64,000 nucleotides of DNA from Caecitellus pseudoparvulus (GCA_965644315.1 CBFFRQ010000062.1:310001-374000); one strand, 5' to 3'. Positions 48,299 to 59,940 are shown, counted from the stretch's first letter. Translations and numbers: made by a program. The notes: generated by a model from the letters alone, not told the origin.

Positions 48299-50836
48299 TC
48301 ACAGGTACGGCATGAGGCTGAGGGCCGTTCCTGGCGGGCAGGGGCGCAGGGACTGCGCCGTGGGGGCTGGGAGGGGTCCCAGACTCACTGCCTGGTGCAG
48401 TTCGGGGTCGGCCGAGCCCGGCGGCGGCAGCGGCATGCCGGCCACCTGCACCGACACCCGCTCCGCCGTGCGGACACTCTGGGCCACCATAGCAGCCATA
48501 CGAGCGCGGCAAGAGGCGTTGAAGCGCTGCAGGGCCTTGGCGATGGCCGCCTCCCGCGCCTCCGCCACACTGGTGGTGGTGCTGGCGCTGCCGGCACTGC
48601 CTGGCCCCCCCTCGCCCCCCACCCCCGGCTGGTCCGCAGTGGACGCTGCGGCAGCGGTGGCTGCCGCCTGGGCCTCAGCCGCCGCCTCCGCTGCGCCCCG
48701 CGCCGCCAGCAGTGCCATGCGGACGTTCACGCGCCAGGGCTCGGAGTCCGGAACACAGCAGGCAGTGGTGACCATGGCCTCCAGGGGGTTCAGGCCGCTC
48801 TGCCGACACACCATGCGCATCTCGGGGGGCAGCTTGGAGGGCTCCGCCAGCACCAGGCGCTCGATGGCGTCCAGCTGCGCAGAGTGGTGGTCCACGCTGT
48901 CCAGGGGGATGGGCGTGTGCGTGGACACGGCGTCCAGAGTGTACGTCGTGCGGCAGAACACGCGGCCGCTGCCAGAGTACCGCTCCAAGTGCGCCACCTG
49001 CAGTGTGTACAGGGGGATGGCGCGCCGGCCGTACAGGGGACTGCTGGCGGGCTGGGGCTGCTCCTCCGGCGCCGCCACTGCGCGGGGCCGGGCGTGGGCC
49101 ACGGGGTCCGCCGGCGGCAGCGCCCGCATCAGGTGGGCTTCGAACATGTAGGTGGCTGCCCCCTGGGCCCGGGCGGCCAGGCCCACCAGGCACCGGCGGA
49201 AGAGGTTGTCGGGGTGCAGGCAGCGGATGTGGTAGGCCATGGAGCCATCCACGTCCGGGCGCATGCCGATCATGCGCCCGTTGGCGGAGTTGAAGCGCAC
49301 CGCTCGCAGGCCGACAGCGGGGTAGTCGTTGCCCTGGTCGGGATACCCGCCGAAGATGGCGAAGGTGGTGGGGGTGACCAGGGCGTCCTGGTGCTCCGCC
49401 ATGATGGCGATGAGGGCGGGGCCCGGGACCGGCTCCTCCCCCCGGCTGAGGTGGAAGACGAAGTCATTGGCCTGCTCCACCGCCGCGCCGGGGGCGGTGT
49501 CGAAGAGCGCCGCCAGGTGGGGCCACTCCCGCAGCAGGAAGCACATGGGCATGGTGCTGGAGCCCACTTCCCCCGGCGGGGACTCCTCGTGCACGACGGA
49601 CATGCCGTCCATGTCCCGTGGCAGGGAGGTGGGGGGCTCGCCGTGGGAGGCAGCGGGGCCACGGCGCGCCCGCTTGGCGGAGCCTGACGCCGGGAGGTAG
49701 TCCCTGGCGGCGTCCACAGTGAGGACGCCCACTGGGGCCATGATGACGGGGTAGCCAGGGGGGCAGTGCACTGTGTCCATGCCCAGCCCCCACGCTGTCA
49801 AGGCCGAGGCCAGGCCAGCCAGCGTGAGGTGCAGACCAGCGGAGCTGCCCAGGGCGCTCTGCAGCTTCGTCGAGGCGCTGAAGGCCTCGCCCAGCATGCC
49901 GCCGGCGCGGTACACCCGTTCCAGGAGCGCCTCCCGCAACCCGGGCGCAGCAGGCTCCAGGAGCCGCAGCGGCAGCGTCCGGGAGTGAGTCAAAAGCCGC
50001 ATGAGGGTCAGGTCGTCCGCGTGCACGATGAGCTTGCGCAGGCGCTCCACCATGCCCTGCACGTCAATGCCTGCTGCTCGTGCGTTGTTTATGAAGTACC
50101 CAGAGTTGTACCGCAGGGACTTGCGGCCTCCGTCCCTCACCGTCGCCAGTTGAGTAGGAGGCGCAGGCTGCGCAGGGGCAGGCGGCCGCGAGGCGCTCTG
50201 CCGCGGCTGCACGTGATTCATGTGATACAGAAGAGGGCCGGCCGTTTGCTCCATCTCCTGCCTACTCCGTACTCGGCCGCCCTCCCGGTGTGGGCCCCCG
50301 TGTGCCGGCGGCATTGCCTGCGTGAGGGGCACGCCTGCGCTGCCGGCCGTGCTGGGCTGCAGCGTTGGGTGGATGGCGTGCGTCGCAAGGGGCAGCGGCG
50401 GGGGGTGGCTCTGTGGCACAGGCTGGGGCAACAACCAGCCTCCACTGCTGTGTGTGCCGTGCTGGCTGCCTTGGGCGTGCTGCGCGGGGAAATGCTCCCC
50501 ACTGCCTGCCACAGCAACTCCGCCACCGTGGCTTGCCGCTTGGAAAGCCGGCAGGCCGCTGCTGGTGCGCTCCGCAGCCATCTCAAACAGGTCGTCCAAA
50601 CTGTCCATGGAGGTGGACCTGGGTGATGCGTTTGGCCGGGTTGTCAGCAGCGCCTCCAGGGAGGACGTGGAGCCAACGCGAGCCAAGCCCTGCCCTGGTG
50701 ACGTAACGCCAAGCGCCCTGCTCATACTGTCCCCCCCGCCAAAGGCGTGGAATGGCGTGCATGGCAGGCCAGGCGACGTCGTGGCCAGGCTTTCCTCGCG
50801 ATGCGCCCCGAATAAGGGGGAGGCGGCTGGCTGCAT
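48299..50836 (-). CDS. Uncharacterised PAS-like domain protein, paralogue A, ~845 aa
   Basis: Long ORF with strong GC3 bias that shares motifs with the two upstream genes. ATG 50836 is preceded by a probable 5'UTR intron (50935-50842, CAG|GTGCGG...CTGAC..CACAG). Confidence 0.8.
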   Translation of the reverse strand: MQPAASPLFGAHREESLATTSPGLPCTPFHAFGGGDSMSRALGVTSPGQGLARVGSTSSLEALLTTRPNASPRSTSMDSLDDLFEMAAERTSSGLPAFQAASHGGGVAVAGSGEHFPAQHAQGSQHGTHSSGGWLLPQPVPQSHPPPLPLATHAIHPTLQPSTAGSAGVPLTQAMPPAHGGPHREGGRVRSRQEMEQTAGPLLYHMNHVQPRQSASRPPAPAQPAPPTQLATVRDGGRKSLRYNSGYFINNARAAGIDVQGMVERLRKLIVHADDLTLMRLLTHSRTLPLRLLEPAAPGLREALLERVYRAGGMLGEAFSASTKLQSALGSSAGLHLTLAGLASALTAWGLGMDTVHCPPGYPVIMAPVGVLTVDAARDYLPASGSAKRARRGPAASHGEPPTSLPRDMDGMSVVHEESPPGEVGSSTMPMCFLLREWPHLAALFDTAPGAAVEQANDFVFHLSRGEEPVPGPALIAIMAEHQDALVTPTTFAIFGGYPDQGNDYPAVGLRAVRFNSANGRMIGMRPDVDGSMAYHIRCLHPDNLFRRCLVGLAARAQGAATYMFEAHLMRALPPADPVAHARPRAVAAPEEQPQPASSPLYGRRAIPLYTLQVAHLERYSGSGRVFCRTTYTLDAVSTHTPIPLDSVDHHSAQLDAIERLVLAEPSKLPPEMRMVCRQSGLNPLEAMVTTACCVPDSEPWRVNVRMALLAARGAAEAAAEAQAAATAAAASTADQPGVGGEGGPGSAGSASTTTSVAEAREAAIAKALQRFNASCRARMAAMVAQSVRTAERVSVQVAGMPLPPPGSADPELHQAVSLGPLPAPTAQSLRPCPPGTALSLMPYL

Positions 50837-51369
50837 GGCTCCTGTGAGGTCAGCAAGCCGTGAATGGTGCCAAGCGCACTGCACTTGGCCCCTGCTTCGC
50901 TGCAGCTCTGCTCCACGGCGCAAGGGGTGCCGCACCTGGTCAGCCAGTGCGCCACAAAACGCCAATGTGGCTGGGAGCACCCGAGGGTGTCCCTCCCCAG
51001 CACGGTGTGCTGGCAATTGCGACGCTGGGCACCGTGCCGCTGCCGGTGCACGAGTTCTGCCTGGCTTGGGAACGGCGGCGCCGAGCTGCCCTTTGCAGGG
51101 AGAAGGCAGCAAGACCCGGAACCACAGAGACGGTGGAGAAGCCACCGGAGCAGGAGAGGCGATGAGGGGCGCGTCGCACGTTGGTTGTGAGCTCTATCGG
51201 ACACTGCGCGGGAAGCGCTGGAGCTTAGCGCCTCGGCATGTAGCACGCCGACGCAGGCGAGGTGGTGGTGGCGGGTGCGGAAACATGGAGGGCTGCATTA
51301 TCATGGATATCGTCATGCTGGGAAACAAGTGCTGGCGGGCGGAGCGCCGCCCCTCAGCGCGCTGCGGCG

Positions 51370-53722
51370 TCAGAAGTACGGGACAAGGTCAAAGTCAGCG
51401 GCGGCTGCTGCGTCACTGCTCACGGGCGCAGCACTGCGCAACGCATCCAGCAAGGCAGCGTCGGCAGGCTTGGGCACCGTCAGGAACTTCTTTGCGCCGC
51501 ACACTGTGACTGGGACACTGCAGTGGCGCCCGTCGGCGCCCGTCAACGAACAGTACACGGCGGCAGAGATGCCTTGCAGCACGTCAGGCGGGACGCTGTC
51601 GGCCACTTGCCGCGCAATGTCCGCGAGGCGGGCTGACGTGGAGCTGAGGTCTGCTGTAGCAGCGGCACTGCCGCCGTTCAGCGCCATGATTGCCATGCGG
51701 CACGCGACTCGCAGGAGCTCGGAGTCTGGGTACCGCCGCAAGACGTCCAGCATGACGCTGGCGGGCGACGCGCCTGGGGTTTTGCTCATGGAAGCCAGCA
51801 CTTGCGGGGGCGAATGGTCTCTGGCAAGCAGCAACTGGGACACTGCGTCCAGTTGTGCAGCTGCGTAGTCCATGGACTGCGCCGCCACCACGCGCCCTGT
51901 GCAGAGGATGTCGGAGATGTAAGTGGTTCGGGCCATGACCACGCTCGAGCCGGCATACCGCTCAAAGTGGCTGGTGGTCACGGCATAGAAGGGGCACACA
52001 GCGTGGCTGTCCTGGGCAGGCAGTCCGCCTGCTCCATCGCTGCCCGACCCCGCGCCTGCGCCCACTGCAGCGGACGCCGGCGTGCCGAGTGGGCCAGCGA
52101 GCTTGGGCGGCGTGGCGTGCGCCTTGCTCGGGCAGCGCGCAGTGGGAAGCCTGCGCACGAAGGCCATCTCGGTTTGAAAGGCGGACCAGCCTTTGTTTGC
52201 AGCAGAGATGAGGGCCAGGCACCTTGGGACGAGGGCAGCCGGGTGCTGCACGGATGACAGGCCAGTCTCGGCGTGTGCGCTGTCGAAGGTCATGCCAAAC
52301 AGGCGAGTGAGCGCGGCGTTGTACACTGCGGCCGCCATAGCAGGGCCCGGGAGCTCCTTCCCGGGCGTCGTCTCCACAGCCATCACGAAGGAGTTGCACG
52401 GCGTTTCTTCCGATGAAATGTGTCGGTGGTGCAGCGCCACCAGGTGCGGCGGCGGCGGCGGTGTGGCTCCCACAGAAAGGCTCTTGAGAAACGCCCGACA
52501 CGCACGAAGCGTGGCACCACACGCGCCGTCCAGGAGGCTCACCAGCGCCGGCCACCGGGAAATGAGGAAATCCAAGGGGGCTATGTTCTCCTGCACGGCA
52601 TCCTGGTACACTGCCGTGCCAGCTGCAGGTGTGCCGTACAGGCCGCCGTCTCGGGGAGCCGACACCACAACGTAGCCTGCCGGGACACGCACGACTTCAG
52701 CATCGTTGCTCCACGCGATGAGGGCGCCTGCGATGCCAGCCAGGGTCAGGTGCAAGCCATCGTAGTGCGCCAGGGGTCCCGGCAACAGGCCAGAGCTGTC
52801 TGCACGGCGAGCTGCGGCAGCTTGCAAGCCAGGCTCAAGCGCCTCCAAAAGCCGCACAGGCGCACCTCCCACCATGTTCGCCCCACGCAGCGCGCGCAGC
52901 AGGGCGACATCAGAAGCCTTGTGCAGAAGGGTGCCCAAACGAGTCGCAGCTTCGCCGCAGTCTACACCCTGGTCCCCCGCGTGCAGGAGCGCGAAGTGCC
53001 GGTTGAGCCTTCGCTCTGTCATGTGAGCAGAAGCCGCCGCAATTGAAATACGCTCATTCATGAGGTGCCCAAGATCTGTGCACGTGTCATGTGCAGCGGC
53101 AGACGCAGGCTGAGGCAGCTTGCAGGGCGACTCGGGCCCTGTGGGCGTGGAAGAAGCCGGGTTGCCTGCCAAAGAAGGGTGTCTGTCAGCCCTCACAACA
53201 GGCTCCTGGCTCCACTCAGCGCCTGAGGGCACTGCAACCGGCTCAGCGCTGCCAGCGCCCCCCGACCACCACGGAGACTCGCTTGACAGAGCAGTTGGCT
53301 TGCTGTCCAGGGTGATGTCGGCCTGCTGCTCCTTTACAAGCTGCTCAAAGTCGATGGCAGTGCCGGCTGCGGAAAACGCCCGGCGCTGCCCTCCTCCAGG
53401 GGTGCCGCTTTCGAAGCTTCCCTGTGGCAAGCAGCTCGGCGCGGCAGGGTGCAGGGCTGGGCTGCGGGAGCCCATGCATCAACTCTGTCCCTTGGCCAGG
53501 GAGCTGCCCCCCAAGCCGGGCACAGCGAAGGCGCACAGTTCACACACTGCCTGATCGGCGTGCACGACAGGCACTCACCTGGTCACGAGCAGCAGCCACA
53601 TGTGCAACTGGCAGCCAGTCCACCTCGCCATCCCATGCGTCAGTGCTGCACCGTCGAGCCTTGAGGCTATGTTGGGGCAGCCCACTGGGTCCCTGGCGGT
53701 CCAGGCTTCGCGTGCGCTTCAT
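51370..53722 (-). CDS. Uncharacterised PAS-like domain protein, paralogue B, ~731 aa; proposed join(53722..53579,53421..51370), alternative unspliced start 53475
   Basis: The main ORF is homologous to A and C. A consensus CAG|GTGAGT donor at 53578 and a TTGCCACAG acceptor at 53422 add an in-frame exon beginning MKRTRS. Confidence 0.75.
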
Positions 53723-54603
53723 GCTGGCAACGCCAAATGCCGCCTCCTTCCAGCCGGCTCTGCGACACGCAGCACAGCTGCCGGGCCAGCGCACCACACC
53801 ACGGCCACGCTCTGTGTACACGGGTTGCCACGACTTGAGCGTGCCTGTCTTGCATTGGAGGTGCCGGCTGTCAGGCAGAGCACGCTTGTCGCGCAGAGTG
53901 GTGTTTTGCGGTACGTTCCAGAATGCAGCACCTGCCCCAAAGCGGAAGGGGCACTGCGCACCCAAAACGCCACGGGGTGCGTGGCCTACGCCGAGAGTCC
54001 AAAGTCCTCCTCGGCTGTGCGCCGTGAGGGGCAAAGTCACAGGTTTGCAGGTGCTGGAATGCTGTGCATGGATGGGCGCCACGTCCGACCAGCAAAGTTG
54101 CAGCGCTGTGGGACGAATGGGGCAGGGCATTCATCAATGCTGGTATGAACCTGCTGCTTTAGGTGGCCAACGGCGTGTGCTCGCTCAGGCGGCGCCCACG
54201 CGTCAGTGGCCGCAGTACTGCGCCGACCCACTGTGAATGCCGTGGTCTGCTGCGCCGAAGTGCAGTGCACCTCACCTCCGCCACGTCTGGAGACGCCAGT
54301 GGTCGGCAAAAGCAGCGGCCGCGCTGCCGAGGCGCGGATTCAGCTCCTAAATTGGATACACGTGTGGGGGTCTGATGGTGTCGTGGGGCTGGCGTGTTCT
54401 GTGGACATGAGCAGGTGACGTGAGAGAGGCTGCGACGACCACGCCACCTCTTCCTTGGGCTGTGCCTGGCGGCGATGTCAAGACACAGGGGCCCTGGAGC
54501 GGCCGCCAAGACCACCAAGCACAAGGCATCGCGCCCTCTTGGTCGTAAGACGGAGGCGTTAAGCCGCTTGGCCCTTACTGAGTGTGCGTGCAGAAGCAGC
54601 AGG

Positions 54604-56685
54604 TCACGAGGGTGGCTGGTCCACGGGCTGCGCCCTCGCGTAGTCTGCCGCAGTGCCTGCAATGGTGATGGCGCCACTCACCAGCGTGGGCCAGTCTGGA
54701 GGGGTGCCTGAAGCGTGGGACGCCTCAGCCTGGCGAACCATGGCCAACAGCGCTGCGCCGCCGAGTGTTGGCATGGGCAGAGTAAACTTGCGACCTGCAA
54801 TGCACATGAGGATGGAAGGGCAGGACCCTCCACCAGTGACCAGTGTGTGCAACTTGGCCATTTCACTTGCCACGCGTGCAGCATCGGCACTGCTGTGCAG
54901 GAGCGCTCCCAAATGCGCCGCCCGCGCGATGTGCCCATCCACCTCCGCAGACTGCTGCTCTGGCTCCGAGTGCCCTGCCCGCCCCCCCAACAACAACAAG
55001 TTTAAACGAATGCGCACCCGCACAGAGTCCAGGTCAGGCGGCAGGAGCGCCAGTGCTGCTGCAGGCGGCAGGCCTGTGGACCGGCACAGCATGCCCACTT
55101 CCATGGGCAGTGCCTGCATCTCCGCATGCTGGCCGCTCCCACCGCCCAGCAGCAACTGCGCGATGGCGTCCATTTGCGCGCCTGCGAAGTCCAGGCTCGT
55201 CTCACTCACAGGTTGCTTGCTCATGACGACGTCGGACAGGAACATGACCTTGGCAAAGGGGGTGCCGTCCTTAAAACGCTCCACAAAGCTGGTCTCCACG
55301 GCGAAAAACGGCACATACGAGATGGCCGCCGGGCCGGCCGAGGCAGCCGCCGCCACGCTCTGCGCAGGCAGCATGCGCAGGAAGAGTCCTTCAAACTGAA
55401 ACGCGTCAAGCCGTGCCGCAGCTGCTGCAAACTGCGCCAGGCACCGGCGCACAAGAGACTGCGGGTGCAGCCAGCGGTCCACACCAGACACGGTTTGGGG
55501 CTGCTGCACACTGGCCCCCAGCAAGTCCACGGCAGCCTGGTTGTACATCTTGCTCTGGATGACCGTGGCGTTGTGGGCTATGGAGAAGAACAGCATGGGC
55601 GTCGTCTCCGCGCCGTTGTGGTGGTGCAGCAGCTCCAGCAGTGGGCCAGGTAGCAACGGCTTGGCGCCGGCCGACACCGCATGCACCCACGCCGAGATCG
55701 CATCCAGATCATGCCGTGTAACGCTCTCAAACACCCGGGGCAGGTGGGGCCACCGGTCCAGCAGAAACGCCAAGTCAATGCGGTGCTGCCCGATGCCCTC
55801 GCTTGGGCCGGTGGCCGAATGCCCCAGGTGGCCGCTGCCACGGGGGGCTGACATGCCTCCCCCCGCTAGGCTGGTGTGCAGGACTGCCGCCGGAGACTGC
55901 ACGACTGGGTGGCCCACCGGGCACGTCACGTGCAAGTGCCCCTCGCTCCACGCGATGAGAGCGCTGGCCAGCCCCAAAGTGGTGAGGTGCAGGCCATCGA
56001 ACGCACTGGCCAAGAGAGGGGGCGGCGGCAAGGGTCTTGGGTGCACGGCCGCGCTGAGGCAGTGCCGCAGCAGTGCAGGACGAAGGTGTGGCAGCGCGCC
56101 GTCCAGCAAGCGGAGCGGGGGTGCTGCGTTGCCGCGCAGCAGGCGCTGCAGGTGCTGGGGTGCCGAGGGTGCCTGCAGCAACGCCAGGAGGCGGTCCACG
56201 AAGCCCTCCACGTCAATGCCCACGCTAGAGCCATGCGTAATGAAGAAGCCCCGGTTAAAGCGGTGCTCTGGCTGGCAGGCCCAGGTCGCTCCCGCCATGG
56301 CTTCCCGCCGGCACGCGTTGAGCAGCTGCTGAGCCCGCCGCTGCGCCGAAGCCTCGTCAGCCTGGTCGAGTGGACCAGTGGCACAGCAAGCGCACTGCAG
56401 ATCATCGCACGGGGTGTGGAGGGAATCACAGCTTGAGCTGCATGCGCTCGCGGCGTCTGGTGCTTCGCCTTGCCCGCCCTCCCCCGAGGCAGTCTGTGCA
56501 GACAACGCCAGGCGTGGTGGAGAGAGGGCTGGCATGTGCACTGCACCACGCAGGCCACTCACTCGTCGGGATTTTCGTCTGGAATCGGGGACAGCGGCCT
56601 CGCAATCGAAGCACTCCGCCTCGCGGCCTCGTTTCGAGGGCCCGACTCCTGCTTGCCTGGCTGAACCGCGCCGTTCAGAGCTCAT
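54604..56685 (-). CDS. Uncharacterised PAS-like domain protein, paralogue C, ~693 aa
   Basis: ORF homologous to A and B. The N-terminus is basic (PSKRGR, RRKSRR) and Cys-rich. Confidence 0.8.
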   Translation of the reverse strand: MSSERRGSARQAGVGPSKRGREAECFDCEAAVPDSRRKSRRVSGLRGAVHMPALSPPRLALSAQTASGEGGQGEAPDAASACSSSCDSLHTPCDDLQCACCATGPLDQADEASAQRRAQQLLNACRREAMAGATWACQPEHRFNRGFFITHGSSVGIDVEGFVDRLLALLQAPSAPQHLQRLLRGNAAPPLRLLDGALPHLRPALLRHCLSAAVHPRPLPPPPLLASAFDGLHLTTLGLASALIAWSEGHLHVTCPVGHPVVQSPAAVLHTSLAGGGMSAPRGSGHLGHSATGPSEGIGQHRIDLAFLLDRWPHLPRVFESVTRHDLDAISAWVHAVSAGAKPLLPGPLLELLHHHNGAETTPMLFFSIAHNATVIQSKMYNQAAVDLLGASVQQPQTVSGVDRWLHPQSLVRRCLAQFAAAAARLDAFQFEGLFLRMLPAQSVAAAASAGPAAISYVPFFAVETSFVERFKDGTPFAKVMFLSDVVMSKQPVSETSLDFAGAQMDAIAQLLLGGGSGQHAEMQALPMEVGMLCRSTGLPPAAALALLPPDLDSVRVRIRLNLLLLGGRAGHSEPEQQSAEVDGHIARAAHLGALLHSSADAARVASEMAKLHTLVTGGGSCPSILMCIAGRKFTLPMPTLGGAALLAMVRQAEASHASGTPPDWPTLVSGAITIAGTAADYARAQPVDQPPS

Positions 56686-57033
56686 GGTGCCGGGCAAGCC
56701 TGCGCTCGGTGGCACACCCAGCCCAGAGCACAAACCGCATGCCAAAACCTACAGCCCTGCGTGCCAAGCCGACTGAGCCCGTGGAGGCAGGATCTGCTGT
56801 GTAGCGCAGGAGTGTTCCTGGCCGCAGCAAATGCTCGTGCAGAGCTGGTGGGTGTGTACGCTTTGAGCTTTAGCACATGCTTCCCCAGCCCTGGTCAGGC
56901 CTGGCTGAGCGTCACGGGTCAAACACCGCGCCGGATCGCCCCTGAACACCGTCCATGGCGCAAGAGGTGCATTTTTGCGCTGAAAAGGGACACGCACAGG
57001 CCCAGGCAAGCTGGGCGGATGTGGGCGAGGTGC

Positions 57034-59940
57034 TCAACCACTCGCTGCCCCACCCGAGCTCGGCGGCGGCGGCGGCGGAGACTCGCCCACAGCGGCTGGG
57101 ACAGCTGCCCCATCAGCTCCCAGCGTGGCATCTTTGGCCAGTTGGCCTTCAAGTGTTTTCAGGCCCGCTGCGATGTCATCTTCCAGCGCCTGCCGCAAGT
57201 TCTCCGCCTCCCCCTCCGAGCCCAACTCTGATGCAGAGCGCACCATTCGGCAGAAGTCAACTTCGCACCAACACCCGTGCATGCTAAACTCCGTCCCCCA
57301 CGTCTCTGCTCCCACATCCGTCAGGCCACTCACTACTTCAAATGCGCAGCACAGACACTCATAAGCAGCTTCGCGGTCGGGAGGGGGCACACGTACAACC
57401 TCCTGAGCCCACGCCTGAGCCATGCTCGCTAACAGCACGCTTGGATACAACTGAAAGACTTCCACGCACCTCAGGCACGCTGCTGCGGCGCCCGCGCTGC
57501 CGGGCGAGGCAAAGTCCTCACTCCGCGGAGCCTGCAGAAGAACTTGCGCCACCGCCCTGCAAGCATGGACGTACGCCTCGGGAAATGCCCAGCCCTCCTG
57601 CATCTGGGCAGCAATTCTGGCTTCAAATTGTGACAGGAGGCGGGGCACGCTAGATGCCAGAAGGGCCTCAGGGGCTGGAGTGGCTTCGGCAACTGAAGCG
57701 GCTTCGGCAGCTGCAGCGGCTTCGGCAGCTGCAGCGGCTTCGGCAGCTGCAGGAGTTCGTGGGGCCAGCAGGGTAGCGTAAACCTGCAGCGACCTAGGCA
57801 GGGCGAGCCCTGCTTGCAGCTGCAGCTGCAAGGGCCACGTAGAGGTGTCCAGGTCGCCAGCAACGTTCCCTTCCATGTATCCCTTAAAGTCCTCGCCTAC
57901 AAGCAGTGTAGTTGCGAGGAACAGTACCAAGCCGCAGTCCTGGGCCAGCCCCCAATCGCCGGGGGGGATGCAGCTCCACAGACACTCCATCAAGTTGGTG
58001 AGCGATACACCCCCATCAAAGATTGCCTCATTGATGCTCTGCGCCACATCCTCAGCCACGTGCTGCAATTTGCTCAAGGAAATGATCCGCCTCACAGGTG
58101 CCGCGTCCGCCGCTTGCCCAGTTGCGGTGTTCAACAGGCTTGTATGCTGTGCAGCTGCCCAGTCTGGGTACAAAGTTCTAGCCTGCTCCTGTGTCACGTA
58201 GCCTTTCAGCACCGACAGATCAATGGGCTTGAGGCTTGCCAAGCAGCGAGTGCGGGCTGGGGAGGTCTTGCCTGAACGAGCACCCGTGGCCAGCTCCCCC
58301 CACAGGTGCGGGAGCAGCTGTTCAAGGAATTCCTCCCGTTCCCCTTCTACCTCTGCGAGTGCCAGCAGGCTGGCGTGGAGGTGGTCCATAAGACTGTCCC
58401 AGTCCTCAGCAATGAAATCCGGCTCGGGAGCCTGCACCCTTTCTGGAGACACCAGGTATTTCGCCGCCCTTGCCAGCTGCTGCGCCGTCCAGGTTGGAGG
58501 TGTTGGCGAAGGTGGTGTTGGAGGTGCAGGCCCGGGTGCAGGCCCTGGTCTGGGTGCAGGCCCTGGTCCGGGTGCAGGCCCTGGCCCAGGTGCAGGCTCT
58601 GGCGCGGGTGTAGGTGCAGGTGCAGGCCCGGGTGTAGGTGCAGGCTCTGGCCCTGGTCCGGGTGCAGGCCCGGGTGCAGGCTCTGGCGCGGGTGTAGGTG
58701 CAGGTGCAGGCCCAGGTGCAGGCCCTGGTCCGGGTGTAGGTGCAGGCTCTGGCGCGGGTGAAGGTGCAGGCTCTGGCGCGGGTGTAGGTGCAGGCTCTGG
58801 CGCGGGTGTAGGTGCAGGCTCTGGCGCGGGTGTAGGTGCAGGCTCTGGCGCGGGTGTAGGTGCAGGCTCTGGCGCGGGTGTAGGTGCAGGCTCTGGCGCG
58901 GGTGTAGGTGCAGGCTCTGGCGCGGGTGCTGGGGGTGCTGGAGGTGTTGGCCAAGGCACTGGTGCAGGCCTAGGTGGCATCGAAACCGCGGGAATGCTCA
59001 GTGGGGGAGCAGGGTTGGGTGCAGGCGGCTGGGGGGGTGGTGCGGTGGGCAGGGTGGCCGGGTTCCAGCCAACGAAGGGCCGGTACACGCCACCCATAAA
59101 ATTCAGCGGCACGTAGACCCTCAGTCGGGGGTGGAGCACCAGTGTTCCGCCGTGTCTGAAGCGGAGGACCTGAGTGACGACGAGGGTGCCGTTGCCGCTG
59201 GGGATGTAACACCGGAAGGTGTTGATGTCGAAGTACACGCCGATGATGTCGTCACGGCGAATGGTGATTTCCCGCCCGTCCCTCGTGAACGACAACTCCC
59301 GGTGCTCTATACCACTTGAATCAACGAGCATGTGGTCAGGCCTTCGAAAGCTCAGGTGCATATGGGCGAGCTGTGTGTCGGAAATCGGCTCAAGGTCCGT
59401 GTCTGGCGGTGCTTCCTTGTGCTCCGACGCGCCACCGTCAGCGTGGGCGGGGTGAGTAGTCGAGGTGATCCGGTCACCACTCAGCCTTGCTGCAGGTGAT
59501 GCCTGAGCCTGTCTACCGCCTTGCGCTGCGGCGTCCACCCACTTGCCTTCCCCCGTTCTCGGATTGACTTGGTACGTCCAGCAGCTTTCCTCACAGCGCC
59601 ACACACCATCAACCAGCGTGAACAGGACTTCAGTGTCTTTGTCTGGCGGATGCAAGAAGTATTCACCTTCAAAGAGGCCAACATCATGTGAAAGGATACG
59701 GCCACTCGCCGCATGGACGTAGCCCCGAATGGCTTCGTGCCAATGGACGACCTGGTCCTGCTCAGGGGTAGGCACGACGTTGCCTTTCTGAGTAAAGACC
59801 ATGCCCGGGACAAGGTTGAAGTTCATGACCTTCTGCGATCCCCGACTTTTCGTGATCCAACCATCCTCCCGTAGCTTCATGGCATTGGCAAGCCACTCGG
59901 GGTGGCGAGGTGAACCATGCCCGCCACCGCTGCCCGCCAT
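57034..59940 (-). CDS. Hypothetical protein, 968 aa: aromatic/beta-rich N-terminal region, PAPEPAPT linker, helical C-terminal region
   Basis: Uninterrupted ATG-initiated ORF with protein-like composition; no family recognised. Confidence 0.7.
57682..57753. repeat. 18-bp tandem repeat x4 (ggcttcggcagctgcagc), encoding AAAAEA
   Basis: Read directly; units start at 57682, 57700, 57718 and 57736. Confidence 0.9.
58522..58924. repeat. Coding minisatellite: 8 near-identical 24-bp units (ggtgtaggtgcaggctctggcgcg, 58733-58924) plus degenerate flank
   Basis: Read directly; it encodes (PAPEPAPT)n on the minus strand, with one variant unit at 58757. Confidence 0.95.

Follow-up and report, generated by a model that had tools for sequence, protein, structure and literature searches.

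Three adjacent genes on the minus strand of the window (the whole 64,000-nucleotide stretch of DNA that we analysed), here called A, B and C, encode proteins that, on the evidence of their sequences, are members without a DNA-binding domain of a family of predicted zinc-cluster–PAS transcription factors. Full-length members have, in order, an N-terminal Zn2Cys6 cluster, a disordered linker and a helical domain of about 200 residues, then a PAS domain followed by a signalling helix and a helical C-terminal domain; the trio keeps all of these modules except the zinc cluster.

Gene models, paralogy and selection

The locus comprises three long minus-strand open reading frames (ORFs), A (48299–51145), B (51370–53475) and C (54604–56745), which contain all the motifs quoted in the preliminary description of this DNA. 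Features are listed in Table 1. Given the substitution pattern in a 98.8%-identical strain, in which synonymous differences are outnumbered by non-synonymous ones, codons 1–179 of ORF A are probably non-coding, and gene A would start at Met180 (50608) and encode 769 amino acids. The start of gene C is uncertain, with Met21 (56685) taken here and Met150 (56298) as an alternative. For gene B, a 99%-identical counterpart (P0001) is present in metagenomes. The spacer between A and B measures 224–760 bp, that upstream of C about 350 bp, and that between B and C diverges by 1.4–1.7% from sister strains.

Table 1. Coordinates of the features of the A–B–C locus, in positions of the window
Feature	Coordinates	Strand	Basis and remarks
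Gene A	48299..50608	minus	769 aa from Met180 of a 948-aa ORF; no zinc cluster; near-identical strain P0003 called at the same start
ORF A 5' extension	50609..51145	minus	Probably 5' untranslated or intergenic; 1 synonymous vs 6 non-synonymous differences
Gene A helical N-domain	49430..50131	minus	Alignments; RYNSGYF ... LPLRLL ... GLHLTLAGLA ... FLLREWPHL
Gene A PAS-fold domain	48908..49429	minus	Aligned to B 340-530; fold evidence is the model of B
Gene B	51370..53475	minus	ORF, 701 aa; zinc cluster absent
Gene B helical N-domain, residues 150-339	52459..53028	minus	AlphaFold2 model of the domain alone, pLDDT 82
Gene B PAS-fold domain, residues 340-530	51886..52458	minus	AlphaFold2 model; strands G and H separated by a disordered loop (445-490)
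Gene B post-PAS helix (AQLDAV) and C-terminal helical domain with beta-hairpin	51370..51885	minus	Model secondary structure
Gene C	54604..56685	minus	ORF; 693 aa from Met21 of a 713-aa ORF; no canonical zinc cluster
Gene C helical N-domain	55657..56280	minus	Alignments
Gene C PAS-fold domain	55207..55656	minus	Alignment
B–C spacer	53476..54603		1128 bp; no family exon found

The three proteins are clearly related in BLASTP comparisons: A and B share 30% identity over 515 amino acids (E 1e-45), A and C 30% over 451 (E 3e-40) and B and C 31% over 421 (E 3e-37). The similarity is collinear, running from 'RFNxGxF' through 'LPLRLL', 'GLHLT' and 'RWPHL' to a PAS-like block and beyond the 'AQLDAI' helix, and no alignment was obtained for the N-termini and linkers. 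The preliminary description had presented three co-oriented adjacent genes sharing collinear blocks, with wholly different N-termini and linkers, and both observations hold, at about 30% identity over 420–515 residues and with significant E-values on the order of 1e-37 to 1e-45.

Selection was measured against two metagenome contigs (L001 and L002) that contain this locus with 98.8% identity at the DNA level. Whole-gene pN/pS was 0.18–0.22 for A, 0.14–0.18 for B and 0.11–0.12 for C; in the conserved cores, the values against the sister strain were 0.056, 0.14 and 0.11, respectively. In the same sister-strain comparison, no such constraint is seen in the non-coding flanks or in the false 5' extension of ORF A. 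Nearly invariant residues of the family are all retained in the trio except one, an R replaced by E in A. By these sequence comparisons, A, B and C are intact, old and diverged paralogues under purifying selection. The earlier proposal of old duplications with three intact copies is supported by their open frames, their low mutual identity and core pN/pS values of 0.06–0.14.

Other genes in the window are ordinary eukaryotic ones and encode a polycystin-type channel, TMEM120, a TIG-repeat protein, TBCD, an importin-like protein and a HECT ligase of 7166 residues. The last is an uninterrupted plus-strand ORF of 7166 codons (17745–39245) with a HECT ubiquitin-ligase domain at its end (Pfam E 5e-38), its first approximately 6800 residues having no Pfam match. 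The upstream neighbour of the trio (57034–59940, minus strand) encodes 968 residues with no Pfam match, the middle of which is an extended (A/E)P(A/T)P repeat; compared with the metagenome strains, the genome is 83–92% identical in this repeat and 97–99% in its flanks. The genome is GC-rich and intron-poor and probably belongs to a heterotrophic microbial eukaryote. It is probably unlike that of a typical fungus, given that Fungal_trans (PF04082) gave no match in a search run without a positive control and that just six unsplit and eight split zinc clusters were found; no match to a chlorophyll a/b-binding (light-harvesting) protein was detected in it.

The PAS core and its flanking domains

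The structure of the core was approached through an AlphaFold2 model of B built from a 29-sequence family alignment (pTM 0.73), in which residues 150–600 form the confident part. Residues 342–527 of this model fold into a five-stranded PAS-type sheet, with predicted strands at 360–367 and 378–385, then helices, followed by strands at 432–442, 492–506 and 513–525, which is the PAS order. Compared with 48,161 solved chains using VIA, this region had PAS or LOV domains as nearly all of its top 49 structural matches (Z 4.4–6.2, 100–120 residues aligned, rmsd 2.6–4 Angstrom), and Foldseek with the B model returned a weak list dominated by LOV domains. A profile of the family PAS region alone, searched against the PDB, matched the hERG PAS domain (1byw) in register at E 0.08, which is below threshold; the family pattern aligned there is 'N.a...L.G ... 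HP....RR ... fEg..lR'. Among the Pfam models, PAS_8 reached E 0.18 and PAS_4 at best E 0.045, the latter in 2 of 29 members; both are likewise below threshold, and none of the Pfam PAS models passed it among the 29 family members. Shape-based and feature-based searches of the ESM Atlas gave just partial PAS matches or heterogeneous helical-repeat noise. Each of these lines is modest; since they agree in combination, however, the predicted PAS fold of the A, B and C core can be considered sound. The PAS-like core suggested in the preliminary description is thus upheld by the B model, the VIA matches and the in-register hERG match.

The likeness to PAS and LOV domains of known structure (Rhodobacter LOV 4hj6, Brucella LOV-HK 6pps, NifL 2gj3 and the hERG eag domain 1byw) lies in the predicted five-stranded sheet and the helices between its strands. 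The family differs from them in that it reaches the threshold of no curated PAS model, in that neither a flavin-binding cysteine motif nor any other cofactor signature was found in it, and in that strands G and H are separated in several members by a long disordered insert.

The helical domain that precedes the PAS domain was also modelled in isolation (B 150–345; pLDDT 82). Its predicted fold matched no known one convincingly: the best VIA result against solved structures had Z 5.1 over 63 residues among heterogeneous matches, Foldseek returned nothing, and neither did the sequence profile of the domain against the PDB. After the AQLDAV helix, the secondary structure of the model indicates a helical C-terminal domain that includes a beta-hairpin.

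A zinc-cluster family and its members without DNA-binding domain

With a profile built from the three cores, at least 12 paralogues were recovered in the 30.6-Mb genome assembly to which the window belongs, and the trio thus does not by itself define the family, contrary to what had been proposed. Besides the trio on contig C62, there are tandem pairs on C89 (C89a and C89b) and C65 (C65a and C65b) and single copies on C25, C32, C6, C1 and C66. The C6 and C1 copies (L011 and L012) hardly differ, even in their introns and upstream exon, and may be alleles, an assembly duplicate or the product of a very recent duplication. A possible segmental duplication linking the C62 and C89 arrays was discarded, as tblastx of the flanks gave low-complexity noise.

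Outside this genome, HMMER was run exhaustively over 1.84 billion representative proteins and matched just 30 clusters, none of them named, in a library that itself carries no names. Twelve of the 30 are 94–99% identical to copies in this genome, 17 are 27–45% identical and derive from other environmental eukaryote contigs, and the remaining one (P0028, 3017 residues) gave a weak match confined to a short segment. Word-seeded protein searches with B and with the 29-sequence profile returned just the same or closely related environmental proteins, and A, B and C have no match to any Pfam model. Judged by these searches, the family is small and narrowly distributed. Tandem relatives also occur elsewhere (P0004 with P0009, and P0016 with P0023). 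On the environmental contig k141_376301 (L027), P0016 is followed by P0023, with another long gene upstream; given this tandem in a related organism, arrays of the family recur across species.

Eight of the 12 genome paralogues (C89b, C25, C32, C6, C1, C65a, C65b and C66) encode an N-terminal Zn2Cys6 (Gal4-type) cluster upstream of the core, and thereby combine cluster and PAS in one protein, while the trio has PAS alone. In all eight, the cluster is split at a conserved position, after 'CDG(K/Q/E)', by a gt...cag intron, as in C25 ('CAACQKVKMKCDGK | gtgcgt...cag | RPCARCKRLGIEC'), and gene callers missed the cluster hidden by it. The exons were scored separately, unjoined: exon-1 pieces matched positions 2–16 of Pfam Zn_clus (E 8e-4 and 8e-3) and exon-2 pieces positions 16–34 (E 2.7e-4 to 1.6e-2). 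A cluster split in the same way also occurs in P0004, P0009 and P0010, which are relatives from other organisms, and it is therefore ancestral to the family. These results modify two earlier claims. The statement that the proteins match no named family stands for the core, which no curated family matches, and is not supported for the family as a whole, since a zinc-cluster DNA-binding domain is found in eight of the genome paralogues and in foreign relatives. Similarly, the family is narrow, as expected of a lineage-specific one, though its full-length architecture is one known from fungal AcuK/AcuM.

A separate protein of this genome, C67, is encoded by a 1236-codon ORF (L016:1044–4751, plus strand) and has an unsplit Zn2Cys6 cluster at its N-terminus. 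Its residues 486–600 form a weak PAS-like stretch (16.7 bits to the family PAS profile), and a word-seeded search found only environmental proteins as its relatives, at 63–65% identity.

The trio is not alone in having no cluster. C89a, which adjoins the cluster-bearing C89b, has none, nor was one found in the upstream DNA examined for P0013, P0018, P0023 and P0026, and P0016 has only a decayed 'QQRPCARRGVKRSS'. Among relatives from other organisms that were checked (the near-identical strain excluded), about half also lack it, so that roughly half of the family has no DNA-binding domain. The trio, C89a, C89b, C25, P0004 and P0010 form one clade with support 95/96 in a maximum-likelihood tree, in which there are weak indications of a pairing of A with C89a and of C with C89b. 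As the trio sits in this supported clade together with cluster-bearing members, the state without a DNA-binding domain is derived.

For the trio, the absence of a DNA-binding exon was read from a pattern scan of the genomic DNA: no half-cluster of the CX2CX6C or PxCxxC type (full motif CX2CX6CX5-12CX2CX6-8C) occurs in any minus-strand frame between 47000 and 60500. Within gene C (56562–56620, minus strand), 'ECFDCEAAVPDSRRKSRR' combines a CxxC with a basic run and leads straight into GTGAGT. Exon 1 of the cluster ends at this point in the paralogues, and 'ECFDCEAAVPDSRRKSRR' may be a decayed relic of the cluster with the intron retained. The B–C spacer contains 'SCAACRRAGWKE', and no convincing Zn2Cys6 half was found in any of its minus-strand frames. 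For the candidate relics in gene C and upstream of B, tblastn and MAFFT gave only noise; the third cysteine is missing, and there is no convincing alignment with real clusters. A splice joining the upstream piece to B was rejected, as there is no frame-preserving option, and neither candidate yields a usable splice.

Possible roles and comparison with known systems

The reading of the trio that we favour, to which we assign about an even chance, is that A, B and C are partners or modulators of their zinc-cluster paralogues. Lacking a DNA-binding domain, they would pair with the DNA-binding members through the shared PAS and helical module and, once paired, might tune the activity of these as co-regulators or inhibitors; the PAS domain may sense the signal that drives this modulation. 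This reading is drawn from analogy with AcuK/AcuM, VVD and Id. Its broader form is more tentative: the lineage, non-fungal in appearance, could have a combinatorial system of its own, in which zinc-cluster–PAS factors and an approximately equal set of paralogues without DNA binding heterodimerize via a signal-sensing helical–PAS module not described before, the trio being dedicated modulators comparable to VVD or Id.

The three proteins could instead be autonomous PAS sensors or adaptors, for example ligand-binding ones with unrelated partners, the cluster of the paralogues merely tethering the same module to DNA. That half or so of the family, across several organisms, has no cluster agrees with this idea, as does the far better conservation of the module than of the linkers, and an N-domain with no known fold leaves its activity open. 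We nevertheless regard it as rather unlikely: copies with and without DNA binding are close paralogues, sometimes adjacent to one another, and in the nearest known architecture the PAS domains serve partner pairing (PMC12719309). Less probable still is that A, B and C are ordinary zinc-cluster factors whose DNA-binding exon was missed through divergence, a position further upstream or different splicing. The paralogues show how such an exon can be hidden by an intron and overlooked by gene callers, and both the CxxC and basic run of gene C, at the place of the family intron, and 'SCAACRRAGWKE' in the B–C spacer could be taken as traces of one. Against this count the scan, in which no family-type half-cluster was detected, the shortness of the A–B spacer and of that upstream of C, the candidate relics that have no third cysteine and cannot be aligned with real clusters, and the lack of a splice onto B that preserves the frame. 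Finally, loss of the DNA-binding domain and the strong divergence of the paralogues (identity of about 30%) might be expected of decaying duplicates without function; open frames of 693–769 codons, constrained cores and retention of the family-invariant residues make this very improbable.

Transcription factors of the zinc-cluster type are commonly regarded as a hallmark of fungi (PMC5415576), and fungal Zn2Cys6–PAS factors act as heterodimers and depend on their PAS domains (PMC12719309, PMC8092316). The full-length paralogues share an N-terminal Zn2Cys6 cluster with Gal4-type factors that contain Fungal_trans, from which they differ by the PAS-based module after the cluster; none of the 29 family members matched Fungal_trans (PF04082 and PF11951) at E 0.1 or better. 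To our knowledge, the pairing of a zinc cluster with PAS is known solely from the AcuK/AcuM group (Ert1/Rds2/Gsm1 in yeast, Aod5/Aod2 in Neurospora and Pas2/Rds2 in Cryptococcus). This group is the closest known architecture: the full-length paralogues share with it an N-terminal Zn2Cys6 cluster, a long linker and a single PAS domain, and several paralogues per genome occur in both. The family differs in having a conserved helical domain of 200 residues before PAS and a structured C-terminal domain, in the family-specific intron that splits the cluster and in the absence of a DNA-binding domain from about half of its members, the trio included. No sequence homology with AcuK/AcuM was detected in the profile search, whose 30 matched clusters among 1.84 billion proteins come from a library without names.

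VVD acts on the White Collar Complex, and Id/Emc on bHLH proteins. With these, the trio would have in common a dimerization module that is paralogous or related to that of DNA-binding members, lacks a DNA-binding domain and exists beside them, although the resemblance is purely one of functional analogy, without homology.

These data provide a solid annotation advance rather than a new principle, together with a warning that prokaryote-style gene calls on contigs of this kind miss the functional clue. The family combines a new conserved domain before PAS with an intron that hides the cluster and with many members without DNA binding. It presents AcuK/AcuM logic in sequences with no detected homology to that group, in a poorly sampled, non-fungal-looking eukaryote, and offers a natural system for studying how dimeric sensor–transcription-factor networks diversify.
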